Positions 17,303-39,424 of a stretch of DNA of 40,729 nt are shown in pieces. The notes under the pieces were generated by a model that was not told the DNA's origin, made no database searches, and saw nothing but the letters and a program-made list of their open reading frames with translations. The stretch lies in the IMG/VR virus record IMGVR_UViG_3300005859_000002, positions 1 to 40,729 of that record. One strand, written 5' to 3'. The translations under genes were made by a program, and so were the position numbers. Numbering within the stretch: the first letter of the stretch is position 1; the number at the start of each line of letters is the position of its first letter.

Positions 17303-18712
17303 TTATCTATTTGCTATATTATTAAAGTTTTTATAATAGAAAATTGTCTTATACTGTTTCGCTTTAGCACCTTTTTGAGCCAGCTTTAATCTATTTTCAA
17401 TTTTAGCTTGTCCTTGAATTTTCTCTCCATATTCTTGAGCAAATTGTAAATCTGCATTTGATAAGCCGTAGAATGCCCATTTAGTTTTCCAGTAATTTAG
17501 GAAATCAGGATATGAAAGCGTTCTTTTTCCTGAATTATAACTATAGTTTTGTTGATACGGATATCTTGCAATTTCCAAAATTGCACTAGCTACCATTTTT
17601 GCATACCATAAATTAGAATATTTCTTATTTACAAGTTGTTGTATATGTAGAAATTGTTGATATGTAACTGCATAATTCTCAATTTCTGAACTATAAGTAA
17701 TATTTTGTCCACCTGGTGAAGGATCGTAAAGATGCATCTTAAATAGATTTCCAAATATTGAAATTACAGTTTTATCTGCTGTTAAAATTGCGACTAAATC
17801 TAATTCATTAACTTTATTTGGATTGAATTCAGGAATTAGAATAGCAAGATCTAGAGGGGTATAATCTAAAATCATTCCGAATATATTAGCGAAATTTTGG
17901 AGAATCATATTATTTTTTAATTGTACTTTATAAGTTGGATTTTCCTCAATCTCAGGATCTAAAACACAACGATCTAACCAACCTACGTCTAATGCAAAAC
18001 CGCTATTAATTATTTCATTTAAGTTGGGAATAAATGCAACTATGAATTTTGCTAAATCTGGAAGTTGATTATAGTTTAAATTTAACGCGTTTAATAAATC
18101 TTCAACACCTGTATTTTGAACATTTGATATTGAATAATTATCAACACTAGGAATATTAGTTTTCCCAACACCTAAAGTTTGTAAATTAAGAGCTATATTT
18201 GAATAACTTAAAGTATTGAAATATTGTTCTATTTTTTTACATGCTTGATTTCTATTAATTATTGTATTCGCTGGTTGATAAACTGAAAGATCGAAATAAG
18301 TTTCATCAAAAACTGCAGGTTGATACAGAACACTACAAAGATCTACATAATTATCATATTCTTGCGTAAAACTATTAATTGCTTGAATTCCTGAAGTTTG
18401 TCCAAAAATTGAACTTTGTCCTAATTGTAGAAAATTAAACGAATTAGTTTGAGGATTAAATTTTGAAATTGCTAAATTGTTTAATCCTGATAAAAGAGCT
18501 GAAATAATTGAAGCGTATGCAATTCCATAATTTGTGTTTAAGCCTGGTGGAATTTCAATATTTTCAAGTGGAGTTGGCAGAACTGACTCAACTCCTGCAT
18601 TGAACATTGAAGAAAAAGCTGGGAATGTTTTTCTGCTAATTGTTTTATGATATAAGTGGTATTTCATTGAAGCGATTGATCGTTTTCCAACACTCTTCCC
18701 CATATTTCTCAT
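17303..18712 (-). CDS. Minor virion protein (SIRV2 ORF488-like)
   Basis: Size, position, AVFDETYFDLSVY and LDVGWLDR motifs. Confidence 0.82.
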   Translation of the reverse strand: MRNMGKSVGKRSIASMKYHLYHKTISRKTFPAFSSMFNAGVESVLPTPLENIEIPPGLNTNYGIAYASIISALLSGLNNLAISKFNPQTNSFNFLQLGQSSIFGQTSGIQAINSFTQEYDNYVDLCSVLYQPAVFDETYFDLSVYQPANTIINRNQACKKIEQYFNTLSYSNIALNLQTLGVGKTNIPSVDNYSISNVQNTGVEDLLNALNLNYNQLPDLAKFIVAFIPNLNEIINSGFALDVGWLDRCVLDPEIEENPTYKVQLKNNMILQNFANIFGMILDYTPLDLAILIPEFNPNKVNELDLVAILTADKTVISIFGNLFKMHLYDPSPGGQNITYSSEIENYAVTYQQFLHIQQLVNKKYSNLWYAKMVASAILEIARYPYQQNYSYNSGKRTLSYPDFLNYWKTKWAFYGLSNADLQFAQEYGEKIQGQAKIENRLKLAQKGAKAKQYKTIFYYKNFNNIANR

Positions 18713-18789: not shown

Positions 18790-19248
18790 ATGAAAATGGA
18801 ATTTAGAGTAGATGAAGCAACAGATCACAATATGATAAAATTTGTTAGGACATTAATTGATTATTATCATCAACAAGGGATGCCGAACGGCGGTGGAGCA
18901 GGAAAGAACAGTAGATATTTTATGTATATTGCTAAAGAAGATATACAAAATTTCATAGTTGCAGTAGCTTGGATTCATGACAATACACCTTTTCGCTACA
19001 TAGCCAGTCAATATAAAATTCCAGCTGATAGATCATATTTTATTAGGAGAATTACAAAAACTGCACCTGGAGATTACGACATTAATTTTTTGATTGATTT
19101 AGGTAAAAAGTTAAAAAATGAAGATTCTGAAGTAATTTGGACTTTAGGAATTCCAGGTAGTCAAAATACAATTTTCAAAAAAGCAGGTTTTGAACAGGTT
19201 GGCGTGACAAATAGGTCAGGTCATCCAGTTTTTGTTAAAAAATTATGA
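18790..19248 (+). CDS. GNAT-like protein (SIRV ORF154-like)
   Basis: YFIRRITK, FKKAGFEQVG; synteny. Confidence 0.7.
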   Translation: MKMEFRVDEATDHNMIKFVRTLIDYYHQQGMPNGGGAGKNSRYFMYIAKEDIQNFIVAVAWIHDNTPFRYIASQYKIPADRSYFIRRITKTAPGDYDINFLIDLGKKLKNEDSEVIWTLGIPGSQNTIFKKAGFEQVGVTNRSGHPVFVKKL

Positions 19249-19560
19249 TTTATCTTTAAAAACTTTATTTGCTAAATATGAAGCTTCGATAAGCGAAACA
19301 AAAATTTCGAGTTCTGATTCATTATTTATTAAAATTCCAAAAACATACCCGAAGAAAATAATTAATGAGTCAATACCTATTTTTTCATTTTTAATCTTAC
19401 CGTCATAACTTTCCAAAATATCATAAAAAGAGTATTCCAAATAGCTAACTTGTTTTTTTATTCTCTTTTCATCTTTTTTACTTATTTTGAAAGTTTGTTT
19501 ATAAACTTCTATCAAATTTTCAAGTGCTTTATCCATGTTAATCAACTTAAGAACATACAA
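19243..19560 (-). CDS. Hypothetical helical protein, paralogue of 21714-22004
   Basis: KIS...I.K.V.YL...L.SY-DGKI shared with 21714-22004. Confidence 0.7.
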   Translation of the reverse strand: MYVLKLINMDKALENLIEVYKQTFKISKKDEKRIKKQVSYLEYSFYDILESYDGKIKNEKIGIDSLIIFFGYVFGILINNESELEIFVSLIEASYLANKVFKDKS

Positions 19561-19587
19561 TATGACATATATAAATTAAAAAGTTTT

Positions 19588-21120
19588 CTATTTTTCTAAA
19601 ATAATAAGATTAATTATTCTGTTTTTGGATCTTCCAAATTTTCCAGGAGATTCGCCTACTATATTGTACCTATTTATAACATTAAGTTCTGACTTTTCTA
19701 TAATTTCATCGAGTTTATTCAATTTATTTTTCATATTAATCATCAGCACAATTCTTCCGTTATCTTTTAACGCTTCCTTACTCCTTATCAGAATCTTAAG
19801 GATTTTTTCGAAATAGTCAATATTTCCTATCTCTTTATTTAGAGATTCTTCTAATTGCAATCTTTCAAACTGATTAGCTACTACAACATGGGGAAAGCTT
19901 ATAGAAGCGTAACTTGGAGCAAGACCGTAGTAAGGAGGATCTATGACTATTAGATCGCTTTTTGGATAAATAACTGTTAAAGCATCGCCTTGAATAGCGT
20001 TTATTTCTCCTCTGAAATTGAATTTCTTTACAAGTTGCTGATTTTTAATACTAGAAAATATTGAGCTTCTAGCATGTAAAGATAATGGATTTGTTTCTAC
20101 AGTATATTTAGGTATCCAAAATGATTTTAATCCCCCTGCAAAAGGTATCGGTTCATTTTGTGAAGGATACCATCTTGACAATATAGAACATGTCTTTACT
20201 GAATCGCTAACGCTTAGCATTAAAAGTAGTCTTTCATTTTCTTCAAGATTTTTTGATTTTTCAGCAATTTTTTGAAAAGTGAGCAATTGTGCTTTAGTAA
20301 ATAATTGTTCAGGATTAGTAATTCCGGACCGTAACAGTCTTTTTCCTTCTTTCAATTCGTCTATATTAACATCAATTACAATATTATGATTCTCGTCTAA
20401 CAACTTAGTTCTTTCAATTAACCAATCTCTATCGAAGACAAACTTCTTTTTAACAATAAATCCAAAAACTTTCCAATTCGAATACATAACGAAATTCCGT
20501 GGTTCGTAATACGGTCCTATGGTAATTTTTATATTGTAATTGCAGTATGGACAATTAGTTTCATCAGTACTTTGTGTTTTAAACGTTTTTGCACAATTAG
20601 GACAAAGAATTACTTTTTCCTTTTTTTCAGTCATGATCCATGATGGTACTTTTCCCCTTGTAATAAGGAAATAAGAAACGTCTTGTCCTTTATAGGTCCA
20701 TACTGCAGACAGCTCATTTTTTACTTCTTCAATTATAGAAGTAATTTGATTGAAATTAACATTACCACGTAATACGGAATATCCTCGAATTATCTTTACT
20801 GCTAATGGATTAATATCTATACCGTAGGAAGTAAAATTATATAGTGAAGCTTCAACAATTCCTGTACCACCACCAGCTAAAGGTTCTAGGTATACTAGTC
20901 CATTTGCATCTAATATCTCTGGTTTTTCGATAGCTTCAAAAAATCTGCTTTCACCATTTAATAAAAACGATGAAAAAATACTTCTATATAAATAAATAAA
21001 ACGTTTGGACCACCATCTATGTAAACTTACTTCTCGTTTCCTTCCACCTTTTTCCTTCTCTAATATCAACTTCTCTATCTTAGGAATGTAATGCTCCAAA
21101 TTATCTAATAATCTTTCCAA
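19588..21120 (-). CDS. Amino-DNA (m6A/m4C) methyltransferase with Zn ribbon, DUF1156/COG1743-like
   Basis: LHRWWSKR, motif I EPLAGGGTG, GIDINP, CPNC/CPYC, motif IV IDPPYY. Confidence 0.88.
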   Translation of the reverse strand: MERLLDNLEHYIPKIEKLILEKEKGGRKREVSLHRWWSKRFIYLYRSIFSSFLLNGESRFFEAIEKPEILDANGLVYLEPLAGGGTGIVEASLYNFTSYGIDINPLAVKIIRGYSVLRGNVNFNQITSIIEEVKNELSAVWTYKGQDVSYFLITRGKVPSWIMTEKKEKVILCPNCAKTFKTQSTDETNCPYCNYNIKITIGPYYEPRNFVMYSNWKVFGFIVKKKFVFDRDWLIERTKLLDENHNIVIDVNIDELKEGKRLLRSGITNPEQLFTKAQLLTFQKIAEKSKNLEENERLLLMLSVSDSVKTCSILSRWYPSQNEPIPFAGGLKSFWIPKYTVETNPLSLHARSSIFSSIKNQQLVKKFNFRGEINAIQGDALTVIYPKSDLIVIDPPYYGLAPSYASISFPHVVVANQFERLQLEESLNKEIGNIDYFEKILKILIRSKEALKDNGRIVLMINMKNKLNKLDEIIEKSELNVINRYNIVGESPGKFGRSKNRIINLIILEK

Positions 21121-21204
21121 GACAGTACACCGTCTTTTCTATTCGAGAAGTCATAAAATGACATATATATATTTATATGTGTCATAATTTTTAAGTTAAA
21201 ACTG

Positions 21205-21570
21205 ATGAATTTTCGAGAATCTGGACGATATTATGAGTATAAGACAATTAATTATCTTCAGAAAAATGGTTACAATGCTGTAAGAATTCCAGTTTCAGGA
21301 ACTGGAAAGCAAGCAATTCCAGATATTATAGCTACTAAGGACAATACAATATTTCCAATTGAAGTTAAATCAACTTCACAAAATCATGTTACAGTAGATA
21401 ATTTCCAAATTGAAAAATTGTTTAAGTTTTGTGAGATGTTTAATTTTTGTAATTGTCAGCCGTTAGTTTTAGTTCATTATAAAAAATATAAAAGCGTCAT
21501 AATATATAATTTAGGGCAAGATGTCAGAAGTAAAAAAGAAATCAAATTTAACTTCAGAAGTAACAGCTAA
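21205..21570 (+). CDS. hjc: Holliday junction resolvase
   Basis: GRYYE, RIPVSG, PDIIA, IEVKS. Confidence 0.96.
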   Translation: MNFRESGRYYEYKTINYLQKNGYNAVRIPVSGTGKQAIPDIIATKDNTIFPIEVKSTSQNHVTVDNFQIEKLFKFCEMFNFCNCQPLVLVHYKKYKSVIIYNLGQDVRSKKEIKFNFRSNS

Positions 21571-21730
21571 ACTGTATTTAGCTTTAGATGATTTGACAAT
21601 GGCACTTGCTACCTGTGATGAAGAAAATATTAGGAAATCTGAAGTTTTTAAGAAAGCGTTAGAAGTTGTTAAAGTTGTAAAAGAAATGCGAAAAATACAA
21701 GTTAAGTCTGAAGATGAACAAAATGGGTAA
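21521..21730 (+). CDS. Conserved rudiviral protein (ORF69-like)
   Basis: Overlaps the hjc 3' end as in SIRV; LYLALDDLTMALA. Confidence 0.7.
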   Translation: MSEVKKKSNLTSEVTAKLYLALDDLTMALATCDEENIRKSEVFKKALEVVKVVKEMRKIQVKSEDEQNG

Positions 21731-22004
21731 ATTTAAAGACGGGTTAAAAGCATATCTAAGTCTGATAAAATTACAGTATAAAATCAGTAATGAAAGAATG
21801 AAAGAGATACAAAAAGAAGTAGAATATTTAGATGAAGAAATAAGAAAAACATTAAATAGTTATCCAGATGGAAAAATAGAAATGTTTTCATTTATTATTT
21901 ATATAGCTTACTTGATGAGTGCAGTTATAGACAATGATGGACTTCTTGAAAGCTTCATAAAAATATTGAAAGAATTATATAATAATAAAAAAGAAACATC
22001 TTAA
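21714..22004 (+). CDS. Hypothetical helical protein, paralogue of 19243-19560
   Basis: 96 aa; visible similarity to 19243-19560. Confidence 0.7.
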   Translation: MNKMGKFKDGLKAYLSLIKLQYKISNERMKEIQKEVEYLDEEIRKTLNSYPDGKIEMFSFIIYIAYLMSAVIDNDGLLESFIKILKELYNNKKETS

Positions 22005-25556: not shown

Positions 25557-26372
25557 ATGAGCGTTAATTTATGTAAATATGAGGCACAGAATATTAGTTA
25601 CATTGATTTAGAAAAATTAGGAGAAAATGCTTATTATGAGATTAAATATGATGGAACTCATATTTGCTTGAAATATGAAGCAGACCTGAAAATTAATACT
25701 AGAAATGACATACCTCACGACAAAGGATATCAAAATTTATTTTATCAGGTTCCAGGAATTGAACAAGTTATAAATTACATAAAAGAAAATGATCAATATA
25801 TTTTACACGGAGAACTTGTTCATAAAAAAACATCTGGAATGCAAATACATGCAAATGAAATACCTCAATTTATCTTATATGATATATTCGATAAAGAAAA
25901 TAACAAATATATAGAGCCGTTAAATTTCGATAATGAAATTTTCTTTTGGCAACCGATAATTTATTTGGAAACTGATTATATTCTGCAAAATATTTTGAAA
26001 GAAAGATTAGAGGGAATTGTTGCTAAAAGCTATAATCAAAATATTGAAATTTGTAAAGAGGGAATAAATTTTAACTTATGTGTTTTTAAATACAAACCTT
26101 TTTATGCGACTCTAGGAGTTATATTCAAGCCAGTTAGGAAAGAAATCGATACTAAAAAATTATCATTTTTATTAGGAGAAATTGATAACGATCTAAAATA
26201 TAATAAAAATAATTGGAAAGAAAATCATCCAGAACTTTATGAATTCTTTATTAAAAATAAAGATAAGATAATAAAAATACTTCAAAATCAAAATATTATA
26301 TCGCAAATAGAGAAAGATACACATCTAGATATTAAAAAAATTAAAGAACATATAGAAAATTTCGCAAGATAA
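25557..26372 (+). CDS. ATP-dependent polynucleotide ligase, probably an RNA ligase
   Basis: Motifs I EIKYDGT, III LHGELV, IIIa FILYDI, IV EGIVAK, V FKYK; helical C-terminus with no evident OB domain. Confidence 0.82.
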   Translation: MSVNLCKYEAQNISYIDLEKLGENAYYEIKYDGTHICLKYEADLKINTRNDIPHDKGYQNLFYQVPGIEQVINYIKENDQYILHGELVHKKTSGMQIHANEIPQFILYDIFDKENNKYIEPLNFDNEIFFWQPIIYLETDYILQNILKERLEGIVAKSYNQNIEICKEGINFNLCVFKYKPFYATLGVIFKPVRKEIDTKKLSFLLGEIDNDLKYNKNNWKENHPELYEFFIKNKDKIIKILQNQNIISQIEKDTHLDIKKIKEHIENFAR

Positions 26373-33491: not shown

Positions 33492-33574
33492 AGTTAGCTG
33501 ATAAGTTTTATGACATATATATCTCTTTAAATTTATGATAAGAATTAAATTGGTCATAAAAACTGTTCCAAATA

Positions 33575-34768
33575 ATGGAATTGGAAAGAAAAAGTTCTGG
33601 ATTTTTAAAAAGCTTCTCAACACTAGATGTTTTTTCAATTAATCTACTTTATATGGGAATTTTAAGCGGAATTAGTTATCCCCTTTTTGTATCAAGCTTA
33701 CTAAAATCTGTAAATTTGTTACTTGCAGTTTTAATAGGTGCAATTTTCGAAATTCCATTATTAGTAATGTATTATATGCTAACTAAGAAAATTCCAATAA
33801 ATGGAGGAGATTATGCATATATTCGTTCAGCATTTTCTCCGAAGTTTTATACAGTTTTCGGAATTTCACTATGGCTAATTTATGTATTTTCAGCACCAGT
33901 GTTAGCTAATCTAGTTCTCATGAATTTCAATATCTCAATAATTGACAAATTCTTTATTTCGGAACTATTATTTGGAACTGCCCTAATTACAATAACTAGA
34001 AAATCAATTTACGCTTATATAGTAGATGCATTAGCTATATTGCAAATAATCGTAGCTCTGTTTTTGCCAATTTCAAGTTTTCATTTTCAAATTCAAAACT
34101 TCACAATATCGAATACTGTTCTTTCAGCATTGCTATTTGATTTATCCATGTTCATATTTCTAAATGCAATTAGTTACATAGCTGGAGAAATAAAAAGCAT
34201 AAGCAGAAACGTAAAAATTGGCTATTTTGCAAGTTATTTAACAGTTGCAGTATTAGCAATTTTTGATAGTTATTCAAACCTAGATATATTACTTGCTTTA
34301 TTCCCAATTTGGTATATGAGCTATATTTTTATCACAACAATGATTCAAAGTCGTTTAGTTCAAAATTTAGCATTTGACAGAGTTTTACCTGAAAAATTCG
34401 CAAAGATAACCCCAAATGTCTTACTATTGATTTTTGTAGCTGATACAATTACAAATGTTCTAGAAAACTTGCTGAACTTTTCAATTTCATTTGGTTTTGA
34501 CGGCTTATTATTCATCTTTTGGAATTTCCTAATTGTTAGTTTAGCATTCCTAAAATTGACAAATAACAAATTAGTATTTTCAATAGCAATATCTAGCTTA
34601 ATCTTACAAATCTTTCTATTCTTCTACTTAGGAATTCAGAATAGTATATTTTACAACTTTGTAATTCAAGGAAATACATTATTTACGATATTAAGAATAT
34701 TAATAATACCTACTATCGGTGCAATTATTTACTTACTTAGAAGAAAAACTATAAACGTAGATCTGTAA
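33575..34768 (+). CDS. APC-family amino-acid permease-like transporter
   Basis: About 11-12 TM segments; PINGGDYAYI, AGEIK, LAFDRVLP. Confidence 0.88.
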   Translation: MELERKSSGFLKSFSTLDVFSINLLYMGILSGISYPLFVSSLLKSVNLLLAVLIGAIFEIPLLVMYYMLTKKIPINGGDYAYIRSAFSPKFYTVFGISLWLIYVFSAPVLANLVLMNFNISIIDKFFISELLFGTALITITRKSIYAYIVDALAILQIIVALFLPISSFHFQIQNFTISNTVLSALLFDLSMFIFLNAISYIAGEIKSISRNVKIGYFASYLTVAVLAIFDSYSNLDILLALFPIWYMSYIFITTMIQSRLVQNLAFDRVLPEKFAKITPNVLLLIFVADTITNVLENLLNFSISFGFDGLLFIFWNFLIVSLAFLKLTNNKLVFSIAISSLILQIFLFFYLGIQNSIFYNFVIQGNTLFTILRILIIPTIGAIIYLLRRKTINVDL

Positions 34769-38505: not shown

Positions 38506-38728
38506 CCCTGAAGCTATTTTCTTTTTTTTATTCCTCATTTTTCTCAACTTCTAAATAATTTTTCATAACTTTTTCTATCTCTTCATCTTTCTAACGCTTA
38601 GAATCAGCCTTAGAAATTCCTCTATATCTTCAAATTCTATAACATTCCTGATAAAAATAATTGATGAAAATAGAAACAGAAAATAAAAAATAATAAAATA
38701 AAAAGAAAAACTAAAAAAATAAGGAAAA

Positions 38729-39025
38729 TTAACTTTGAGATGACAATAATAAATAAACAGAAAAGAAATCATAAATATTCAAAACAGATTTCTGCTTTAT
38801 CTTAGAAATTTCATCAAAATTACTAATCCTGCTAAATCCGATAAAAGAAGTTATGGACATGCTCTCCCAGTGGAAATGCTCACAGCTATTCCTTAACCCG
38901 TATCTGCCATCGCTGTCAGTAACCAGCAATAGCTGATTATCTAATGGGCAGTAGAAATATCTACTACCATCCATCTCCTCAATTCTTAACTGATCTTTTA
39001 TTTGATTTAATTCTATTGCAACCAT
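38729..39025 (-). CDS. Small early protein with CEHFH motif
   Basis: GAGAAAGATTTATATA promoter at 39060-39075; YFYCPLD...CEHFHW. Confidence 0.75.
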   Translation of the reverse strand: MVAIELNQIKDQLRIEEMDGSRYFYCPLDNQLLLVTDSDGRYGLRNSCEHFHWESMSITSFIGFSRISNFDEISKIKQKSVLNIYDFFSVYLLLSSQS

Positions 39026-39223
39026 TTCTTTTCCCTGATATATCGTCTGTCATAACAGATATATAAATCTTTCTCTATTCTTTTATCTTTCTATTTCACG
39101 CTATTTTTAACGTTTAGAACTAGCCTTAGAATTTTATATTCGAATAGAAATATTATAACATCACTGAAAAAAATTACCAATAACCCTACAAAAAATTAAT
39201 TTAAAAAAATAAAAATAAAAAAA

Positions 39224-39424
39224 TTAGACAAATGAAGAAATTTCTAAATAATAGATTCCGTCAAAATTATAAATTGTGATTTTTGTTCCGCCTATCTTAT
39301 CACTAAAACTGTAATATCCATTTGTCTCAGAACTTTTTTCAAAAAAATTTGAATTTCCCTGAAACTGGTTTAAAAGTTCTTTAAATTGTTTTTCTGAAAT
39401 TTTTATTGCTATATAGTGACTCAT
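39224..39424 (-). CDS. Small early protein inside the ITR
   Basis: GAGAAAGATTTATTAA promoter at 39456-39471, GAGGT RBS. Confidence 0.72.
   Translation of the reverse strand: MSHYIAIKISEKQFKELLNQFQGNSNFFEKSSETNGYYSFSDKIGGTKITIYNFDGIYYLEISSFV

Follow-up and report, generated by a model that had tools for sequence, protein, structure and literature searches.

Methylases of the DUF1156/COG1743 family are known from operons that also encode a DUF499 protein and an SNF2-nuclease, described as Hma or 'BR' systems (PMC7641849; PMC11232893; 10.1101/2025.10.09.681413), and 295 of 3708 archaeal virus genomes are reported to encode DNA methyltransferases (PMC13465236). Here we describe a methyltransferase gene in a rudivirus genome, IMG/VR record IMGVR_UViG_3300005859_000002 (JGI contig Ga0080003_1000217), whose full 40,729 nt were analysed and are referred to below as the window. 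Orphan viral methylases that evade restriction are a classic and well-known counter-measure of phages. What is new in the present case is the short subfamily to which the methylase belongs, the different and undescribed partner genes of that subfamily, and its presence in rudiviruses; we found no description of either the cellular gene cluster or the viral gene in the open-access papers that we searched.

The methyltransferase occupies the sole long reading frame of its interval, and it is a real gene rather than a chance frame because its relatives reach E = 0 in a word-based search and its AlphaFold model, calculated from an alignment of 21 family members, is confident (predicted local distance difference test, pLDDT, 89; predicted template modelling score, pTM, 0.90). 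The TTG start lines up with the start codon of all of the relatives in this alignment. In the model, N-terminal helices are followed by Rossmann strands 1 and 2, an insert of about 265 residues that carries a zinc ribbon, and the remainder of the Rossmann fold. The features of the gene are:

Positions 19588 to 21120, minus strand: methyltransferase coding sequence, 510 aa, TTG start and TAG stop.
Positions 21001 to 21021, minus strand: HRWWSKR motif (residues 34-40) in the N-terminal helical, DUF1156-like part; H, R, W, W, S and R are invariant in 21 sequences.
Positions 20860 to 20886, minus strand: motif I, EPLAGGGTG (residues 79-87), which binds S-adenosylmethionine (AdoMet) and follows core strand 1; invariant in 21 members.
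Positions 20011 to 20808, minus strand: nested target-recognition insert (about residues 105-370) between Rossmann strands 2 and 3, with approximate boundaries taken from the secondary structure of the model.
Positions 20542 to 20604, minus strand: four-cysteine zinc ribbon CPNC..(13)..CPYC (residues 173-193) within the nested insert.
Positions 19930 to 19941, minus strand: motif IV, DPPY (residues 394-397), the catalytic loop of amino-methyltransferases; D, P, P and Y are invariant in 21 sequences.

The original prediction, made from the sequence of the window, had described intact motifs I and IV with a zinc ribbon between them; all three were located and are invariant across the 21 family members, including the ribbon cysteines C173, C176, C190 and C193, and the ribbon gives many weak matches to zinc-ribbon families in Pfam. 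Both hallmarks of an amino-methyltransferase, an AdoMet loop of the FxGxG type as motif I and a (D/N/S)PP(Y/F) sequence as motif IV, are present in the window enzyme.

Fold and profile comparisons identify the window methyltransferase as a short relative of the DUF1156/COG1743 (HmaB/BR-type) methylases. A search of the ESM-Atlas returned template modelling (TM) scores of 0.81-0.87 over residues 1-510, normalized by the query, to clusters rich in PF06634 and PF01555, in which PF06634 is found in 49-91% of members and the matched proteins are 720-999 aa long. Alignment of the family profile with hhalign to a 933-aa DUF1156 methylase of the same archaeal order (locus L054) gave a probability of 98.9% (E 1.9e-17), with residues 261-510 of the window enzyme corresponding to residues 385-696 of the longer protein. 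With HmaB and the BR methylases of the DUF499-centred systems related to bacteriophage exclusion (BREX), themselves related to PglXI of type 3 BREX, the window enzyme shares N-terminal helices bearing H-x-W-W-x-x-R, a Rossmann core with motif I, and a large insert after strand 2 that holds one four-cysteine zinc finger and precedes the DPPY motif; its nested insert matches the nested target recognition domain of the BR/PglXI methylases (10.1101/2025.10.09.681413). It differs in length, 510 aa against 720-999 aa, stopping at residue 510 and lacking the C-terminal part of the canonical enzymes, some 300 residues that form a triad of helix-turn-helix-like domains (10.1101/2025.10.09.681413).

The assignment to the DUF1156 type that had been made from the sequence is therefore borne out by the fold and the profile alignment, but the enzyme fails the Pfam and NCBIfam cut-offs for the family, and its C-terminal truncation sets it apart. 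The Pfam model DUF1156 (PF06634, cut-off 24 bits) has no match to the window enzyme at E<=1, and the PF06634 search of the virus record was negative; sub-threshold matches occur in 9 of the 21 relatives (best E 8.9e-5). For N6_N4_Mtase (PF01555) the window enzyme scores 22.6 bits, below the gathering threshold of 26.7, and matches at E<=1 are found in 19 of 21 relatives (best 1.1e-6). The NCBIfam model NF042963 (DUF1156_antiphage) aligns partially, to residues 247-490, at 22.5 bits and E 2.7e-5 against an equivalog cut-off of 1000. Among PADLOC models the best match is the type II methylase MTase_II PDLC03367 (E 3.6e-16, residues 72-471), ahead of weaker matches to HmaB, PglXI and mad2, and PHROG 10183, annotated 'DNA methyltransferase', matches at E 2.5e-13. 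A phmmer search against the PDB sequences returned no match, and Foldseek searches of the PDB and BFVD returned generic Rossmann methylases, none of which matched over the full length.

To place the viral gene among its cellular relatives, homologues were gathered by a word-based search (n = 22), a metagenome scan (n = 23 loci) and a genome search over 301 genomes, and the loci were classified by blastp of their open reading frames (ORFs) against the window proteins and the candidate partner proteins. Two peptide-pattern scans of the genome contigs returned nothing although Stygiolobus has the gene, and the genome search was used in their place. The family is present in 26 of the 301 genomes of the archaeal order that contains Stygiolobus, a patchy distribution such as mobile defence genes would be expected to show. 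The flanks could be read in about 25 cellular loci, which represent two subfamilies (50-61% and 29-35% identical to the window enzyme) and one closer locus, L014 (83%); in these the methyltransferase lies beside a superfamily 2 (SF2; DEAD/ResIII) helicase and/or a phospholipase D (PLD) protein, and mostly also beside a protein of about 460 aa. It adjoins two genes in Stygiolobus caldivivus (KN1_28250, locus L003; 61% identity), in a single-cell genome of the Sulfolobales (53%) and on many contigs from metagenomes. One of these encodes a protein of 1467-1726 aa with DEAD, ResIII and Helicase_C domains, and the other a protein of 453-489 aa that matched no Pfam or PADLOC model; in Stygiolobus the two proteins measure 1677 aa and 453 aa.

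The distant subfamily (29-35% identity, about 600 aa, for example in Zestosphaera) is accompanied by a helicase of about 710 aa, a protein of about 920 aa with a terminal PLDc_2 domain, and a protein of about 450 aa. Over its whole length the large Sulfolobales protein can be aligned with the distant-subfamily helicase plus the PLD protein, and it is therefore a helicase-PLD fusion. In its C-terminal domain the PLD-nuclease signatures HxK and (G/T)SxN are conserved, and matches to Pfam PLDc_2 or NgoFVII-PLD were obtained in both subfamilies. A C-x-D-G-C-x-x-C cluster precedes the PLD domain and is reminiscent of the zinc site of DUF1998; because of these conserved cysteines DUF1998 was sought in the helicase-PLD proteins, and the Pfam search was negative. 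The partner of about 460 aa has no Walker A motif; its AlphaFold model (pLDDT 50) was too poor for searching, a protein-atlas search gave no usable match, and the hhalign comparison of its Sulfolobales and distant-subfamily versions gave a probability of 7% (E 0.005).

The original prediction stated that DUF1156 methylases normally sit with DUF499 ATPases and SNF2 helicases. This agrees with the literature and with a canonical operon in the same archaeal order (L054:1197-10360), which served as a positive control and encodes the 933-aa DUF1156 methylase (33.4 bits), DUF499 (392 bits) and an SNF2 helicase; a further control (L055:7422-16985) has a DUF1156 methylase, a 1042-aa protein and an SNF2 helicase with a NOV_C nuclease. 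It does not extend to the cellular relatives of the window enzyme itself, since neither DUF499 nor SNF2 was found in any cellular locus of the short-methylase subfamily. The long and short methylase subfamilies coexist in this archaeal order, the former in Hma/BR-type operons such as these two.

The defence island system associated with restriction-modification (DISARM), composed of the DrmA helicase, the DUF1998 protein DrmB, the PLD nuclease DrmC and a DrmMI or DrmMII methylase, resembles the cellular cluster in combining a methylase, an SF2 helicase and a PLD nuclease, and the helicase of the distant subfamily gives weak, partial matches to PADLOC DrmA models (E 2e-13). However, the cluster has no SNF2 protein DrmD and no DrmE, its helicases match DpdJ and SngC best, with similarly weak scores, its methylase is of the DUF1156 kind, and it has the additional protein of about 460 aa, which belongs to no known family. 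The conserved gene trio or quartet may represent an archaeal defence system that has not been described before.

Several of these loci merit description in their own right. The conserved cluster of methyltransferase, SF2 helicase, PLD nuclease (fused or separate) and protein of about 460 aa can be followed at L003:10001-19232, L010:303-8550, L008:214-8532, L016:4534-12643 and L005:3555-11857. In the Sulfolobales single-cell genome (L004:11568-16667) the PLD domain stands on its own in a 166-aa ORF that follows the 1467-aa helicase, and L016:7565-12643, which is 97% identical to this copy, encodes one protein of 1692 aa; the split may reflect either a frameshift that inactivates the nuclease or a sequencing error. 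At L021:579-3619 the methyltransferase gene and the gene for the protein of about 460 aa are each split in two, and a 2.6 Mb genome holds methyltransferase fragments with in-frame stops (G105:C1:386875-387621 and 1952828-1953175), so that some lineages appear to be losing the cluster by decay. The methyltransferase at L010:303-1865 is at odds with its own operon, with a GC content of 0.53 (0.69 at third codon positions, GC3) against 0.37 for the adjacent helicase-PLD gene and 0.26-0.35 for all other family members.

The phylogeny and neighbourhoods of the closest cellular homologues had been named as one way to check the original prediction. With the distant subfamily as root of the protein tree, all of the deep branches are cluster-linked, and the viral copies fall into one clade (support 99/99) together with L037, described below, and L014/L038. 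The closest relative of the window enzyme, L014 (83% amino-acid identity), is convergent and overlapping with a gene for a 1676-aa helicase-PLD protein, which is 55% identical to that of Stygiolobus. Since the deep branches are cluster-linked and L014 stands beside a helicase-PLD gene, the transfer ran from cell to virus, and the cellular origin of the viral gene from a restriction-modification-like locus is well supported by the tree and the neighbourhoods.

The gene is not confined to the window. At least four other metagenomic rudivirus contigs (L002/L012, L015, L036 and L039) carry a methyltransferase that is 74-76% identical to that of the window and lies directly beside the gene for the Holliday junction resolvase Hjc, in the same slot and orientation. 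Further rudivirus genes are present on L002/L012, L015 and L036; the 2-kb contig L039 has just the adjacent hjc fragment. In IMG/VR, only two contigs besides the window carry the gene, and one IMG/VR contig numbered under another metagenome (L011) has a 100% identical methyltransferase with identical flanking genes. A tblastn search with the window enzyme against 50,697 deposited phage and virus records gave no match, and no sequenced rudivirus isolate carries the gene, as judged by tblastn and by the SIRV11 and SIRV2 (Sulfolobus islandicus rod-shaped virus) loci. The possibility raised at the outset, that the gene might already be widespread in rudiviruses, is thus realized to the extent that several uncultivated rudiviruses hold it in the same slot, and not among the deposited records. 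The window copy had also been described as an orphan, with no nuclease or ATPase partner, and we agree: blastp and tblastn searches of the window with the helicase, PLD and ~460-aa proteins returned no homologue at E<=0.1, and the record is rated complete. The 469-aa ORF at 17303-18712 was considered as a possible counterpart of the ~460-aa protein and rejected, as it has no similarity to it and is a conserved rudivirus gene, present also in SIRV11 and SIRV2.

Another contig (L037:1-3116) carries a solo methyltransferase (68% identity) beside three tandem ORFs of about 105 aa. The two of these that were searched are C2H2 zinc-finger genes resembling those of fuselloviruses, bicaudaviruses and SBRV1, a type of gene common in viruses of the Sulfolobales, and a 72-aa N6_N4_Mtase fragment lies upstream. 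L037 probably represents a further mobile element of the Sulfolobales with a copy of the methyltransferase.

The alleles at the viral slot fall into two lineages. Monophyly of the viral copies is compatible with the data (approximately unbiased test, p 0.505, not rejected), and the DNA tree groups the window with L014/L038 (91/98). The window and L014 have in common the TTG start and a leader containing GGTG; the second viral lineage has an ATG start and a duplicated copy of the promoter of the neighbouring gene. From the window gene to L014 the synonymous divergence (dS) is 0.43; to the other viral copies it is 0.83-1.01. GC3 is 0.27-0.31 in the L014 and Stygiolobus copies (0.23 in L004), 0.22 in the window, 0.12-0.16 in the second viral lineage and 0.15-0.20 in ordinary viral genes. 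In a sliding-window comparison, nt 226-525 of the window gene are 95-98% identical to L014, and over nt 826-1200 the identity to L014 falls below that to the viral copies. This comparison and segment trees, which are poorly resolved, tentatively suggest that the window gene is a mosaic allele. Its TTG start, leader and intermediate GC3 point to recent exchange between virus and host, and the pattern suggests one old capture at the slot, after which recombination with a host copy would have replaced part of the window allele; a second capture there would fit the data as well. Ratios of nonsynonymous to synonymous divergence (dN/dS) are 0.14-0.27 in all comparisons among the viral copies (dS 0.2-1.0), which indicates that the gene is maintained by selection in the viruses.

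In the reading that we propose, and consider on balance probable, the virus methylates its genome with the specificity of the host system, passes as self and so escapes the cognate cluster. The product of the window gene would be an active amino-methyltransferase, and its DPPY motif, a form of motif IV that favours adenine-N6 methylation, makes it most likely that this is an N6-adenine DNA methylase; DNA is the presumed substrate, and the identity of the modified base is likewise a prediction from the motif. An ancestor of the North-American-type rudiviruses would have taken the gene from the modification gene of a Sulfolobales cluster in which the methylase is accompanied by the ~460-aa protein and by an SF2 helicase that is joined to a PLD (HKD) nuclease. 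In the cell the methylase would mark self DNA and the helicase-nuclease would attack unmarked DNA, so that a virus expressing the methylase from its own promoter would mark its replicating genome as self and escape restriction in hosts that carry the cluster. The make-up of the cluster is restriction-modification-like, and defence against viruses, with sparing of methylated DNA, is its presumed role. Over the recognition insert (residues 141-310) the window enzyme and L014 are 81-85% identical, which is compatible with the viral and cluster-linked enzymes having the same specificity, as the proposal assumes.

This arrangement resembles that of other orphan viral methyltransferases, which, as summarized from Murphy et al. 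2013 in PMC13465236, have no cognate nuclease, an evident cellular origin and a predicted self-protective role; the source here differs in being an undescribed helicase-PLD cluster rather than a classical type I-III system. More tentatively, and as a possibility that we place somewhat short of probable, the cluster of methylase, helicase-PLD and ~460-aa protein may be a new compact restriction-like defence system, related to Hma/BR and to DISARM and fitting neither, whose methylase has been sampled repeatedly by rudiviruses, through capture and later allele exchange, as a dedicated counter-defence.

Several observations weigh against self-marking. In the single experimental test of a DUF1156 methylase that we found, pre-methylation by HmaB had no effect on phage escape in Halomonas (PMC11232893). 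The PADLOC models give the cellular cluster weak and partial helicase matches, to DpdJ, SngC, DrmA, Cas3 and BrxH. The closest solved structures of the catalytic core are the tRNA N2-methylguanosine (m2G) methylases TrmN, Trm11 and Trm14 (PDB 3tma, 6zxv, 5e72, 3tlj), and PF01170 is the Pfam family matched by most members of the 21-sequence set. The last two raise the question of whether the enzyme acts on RNA, for example on guanine-N2 or adenine-N6 of tRNA or rRNA, and so alters host or viral translation. We regard this as improbable: a Rossmann core of about 170 residues, a third of the window enzyme, is all that aligns to the RNA enzymes, their THUMP-type RNA-binding parts are absent, and the place of a THUMP domain is taken by a large nested zinc-ribbon insert as in the PglXI/BR DNA methylases. 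The association with a helicase-PLD nuclease is, in addition, characteristic of DNA restriction-modification. A role in viral processes other than escape from the cognate system, such as the timing of replication or resolution of the linear genome near hjc, gene regulation, or broad protection against other restriction enzymes and methylation-sensitive nucleases, is unlikely in our judgement, though less so than action on RNA. It would suit the position of the gene within the replication and recombination block, the use by the second viral lineage of a promoter duplicated from the adjoining gene, and the purifying selection seen in diverged viruses. However, most rudiviruses, all of the sequenced isolates included, do without the gene, so that a core replication function can be set aside, and the strict helicase-nuclease linkage of the cellular relatives points to the marking of self and non-self.

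The enzyme might instead keep the host chromosome methylated after host expression is shut off, in the manner of an antitoxin, so that the helicase-nuclease of the host neither kills the cell nor aborts the infection. An antitoxin role towards its nuclease partner has been suggested for the COG1743 methylase (PMC7641849), and the viral gene has a cluster-linked copy as its nearest kin; this explanation overlaps with viral self-marking, in that one enzyme would protect both DNAs and the two are inseparable by sequence alone, and taken for itself it seems to us marginally less probable still than a role on RNA. Hardest to credit is a recent passenger without function in the virus. The host-like start and leader and the raised GC3 of the window copy would be expected of such a gene, but it is intact and is found unchanged on the second IMG/VR record from a differently numbered metagenome, and it persists at this slot in at least four other, diverged viral contigs, where dN/dS is about 0.2 and the codon composition is virus-like. 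Viral self-marking by a captured modification enzyme is therefore the explanation that we prefer.

Comparison with the sequenced relatives defines the insertion site. In SIRV2, ORF488, ORF154 and ORF121 (hjc) are contiguous; the order in SIRV11 is ORF27, ORF28 (152 aa), ORF29 (93 aa, opposite strand) and hjc, with an intergenic region of 72 nt. The SIRV11 counterparts in the window lie at 17303-18712, 18790-19248, 19243-19560 and 21205-21570, and the methyltransferase falls between the last two as an insert of about 1.58 kb that SIRV11 and SIRV2 lack. The gene had been placed between the ORF154-like gene and hjc, adjacent in SIRV2; that adjacency and the insert are real, but one small gene separates the methyltransferase from the ORF154-like gene. 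The features of the site are:

Positions 18790 to 19248: ORF154-like gene.
Positions 19243 to 19560, minus strand: small usarudivirus ORF (of the ~93-105 aa type), homologue of SIRV11 ORF29, with a likely ATG start at 19536.
Positions 19562 to 19573, plus strand: left copy of the 12-nt direct repeat ATGACATATATA, which flanks the insert.
Positions 21121 to 21143, minus strand: 5' leader of 23 nt, common to the window and the helicase-linked copy L014 by blastn homology.
Positions 21158 to 21185, plus strand: palindrome of the divergent methyltransferase/hjc promoter region, whose first half is the right copy of the 12-nt repeat (21158-21169).
Positions 21205 to 21570, plus strand: Holliday junction resolvase Hjc (Pfam PF01870, 67 bits).

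The blastn homology between the window and L014 is restricted to 19586-21143, that is, to the ORF and its leader of 23 nt. Within the leader, GGTG at 21128-21131, 8-11 nt ahead of the TTG, may be a Shine-Dalgarno-like element. The sole complete ATGACA..TGTCAT palindrome in the window starts with the right-hand ATGACATATATA copy, the repeat occurs three times in the window against 0.03 copies expected per strand, and the empty site of SIRV11 has a single copy of a related repeat element. We infer that the methyltransferase inserted into, and partially duplicated, a divergent promoter/operator region. The third exact ATGACATATATA copy, at 33510-33521, lies about 65 nt upstream of a 397-aa ORF (33575-34768) with weak similarity, below the cut-off, to AA_permease_2, and the repeat may be a shared operator or promoter element. 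The small ORFs that flank the methyltransferase-hjc block (19243-19560 and 21714-22004) are paralogues of one another, and both are matched by the ORF93 proteins that the related viral contigs L002 and L036 encode.

The virus itself is about 80% identical in nucleotide sequence to the Yellowstone isolates SIRV4-11 (genus Usarudivirus), and the window encodes the usual rudivirus genes for ThyX, a Cas4-like nuclease, an ATPase, dCTP deaminase, Hjc and glycosyltransferases. The record (40.7 kb) is rated linear and 100% complete by IMG/VR and CheckV. The arms of the inverted terminal repeat are asymmetric (1-212 and 38520-39247): the left arm begins at base 1 and the right arm stops about 1.5 kb short of the contig end, and because of this asymmetry the left terminus has probably been truncated in assembly. 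Downstream of a 1058-aa structural gene, a 271-aa ORF (25557-26372) has similarity to RNA_ligase (E 7e-8) and DNA_ligase_A_M (E 8e-7), which suggests an ATP-dependent ligase-like gene.

To our knowledge, few defence systems of the Thermoproteota beyond CRISPR-Cas have been tested, and few viral counter-defences are known. If the methyltransferase should prove inactive or unrelated to defence, it would be one more accessory gene in a variable region of the rudivirus genome. As it stands, the window enzyme is a minimal (510 aa) methylase of the DUF1156/PglXI type, a class with no solved structure among our search results and with little biochemistry, and the two viral lineages, which share one slot and differ in their adaptation to viral codon composition, show signs of ongoing gene flow between virus and host at a defence locus. 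The viral gene also points to a conserved, undescribed gene trio in hyperthermophilic archaea. If the more tentative reading, of a new defence system sampled by rudiviruses, is correct, the viral gene would serve as a natural 'key' to the system and would report its specificity, in the genetically tractable pairing of SIRV-type rudiviruses with Sulfolobus.

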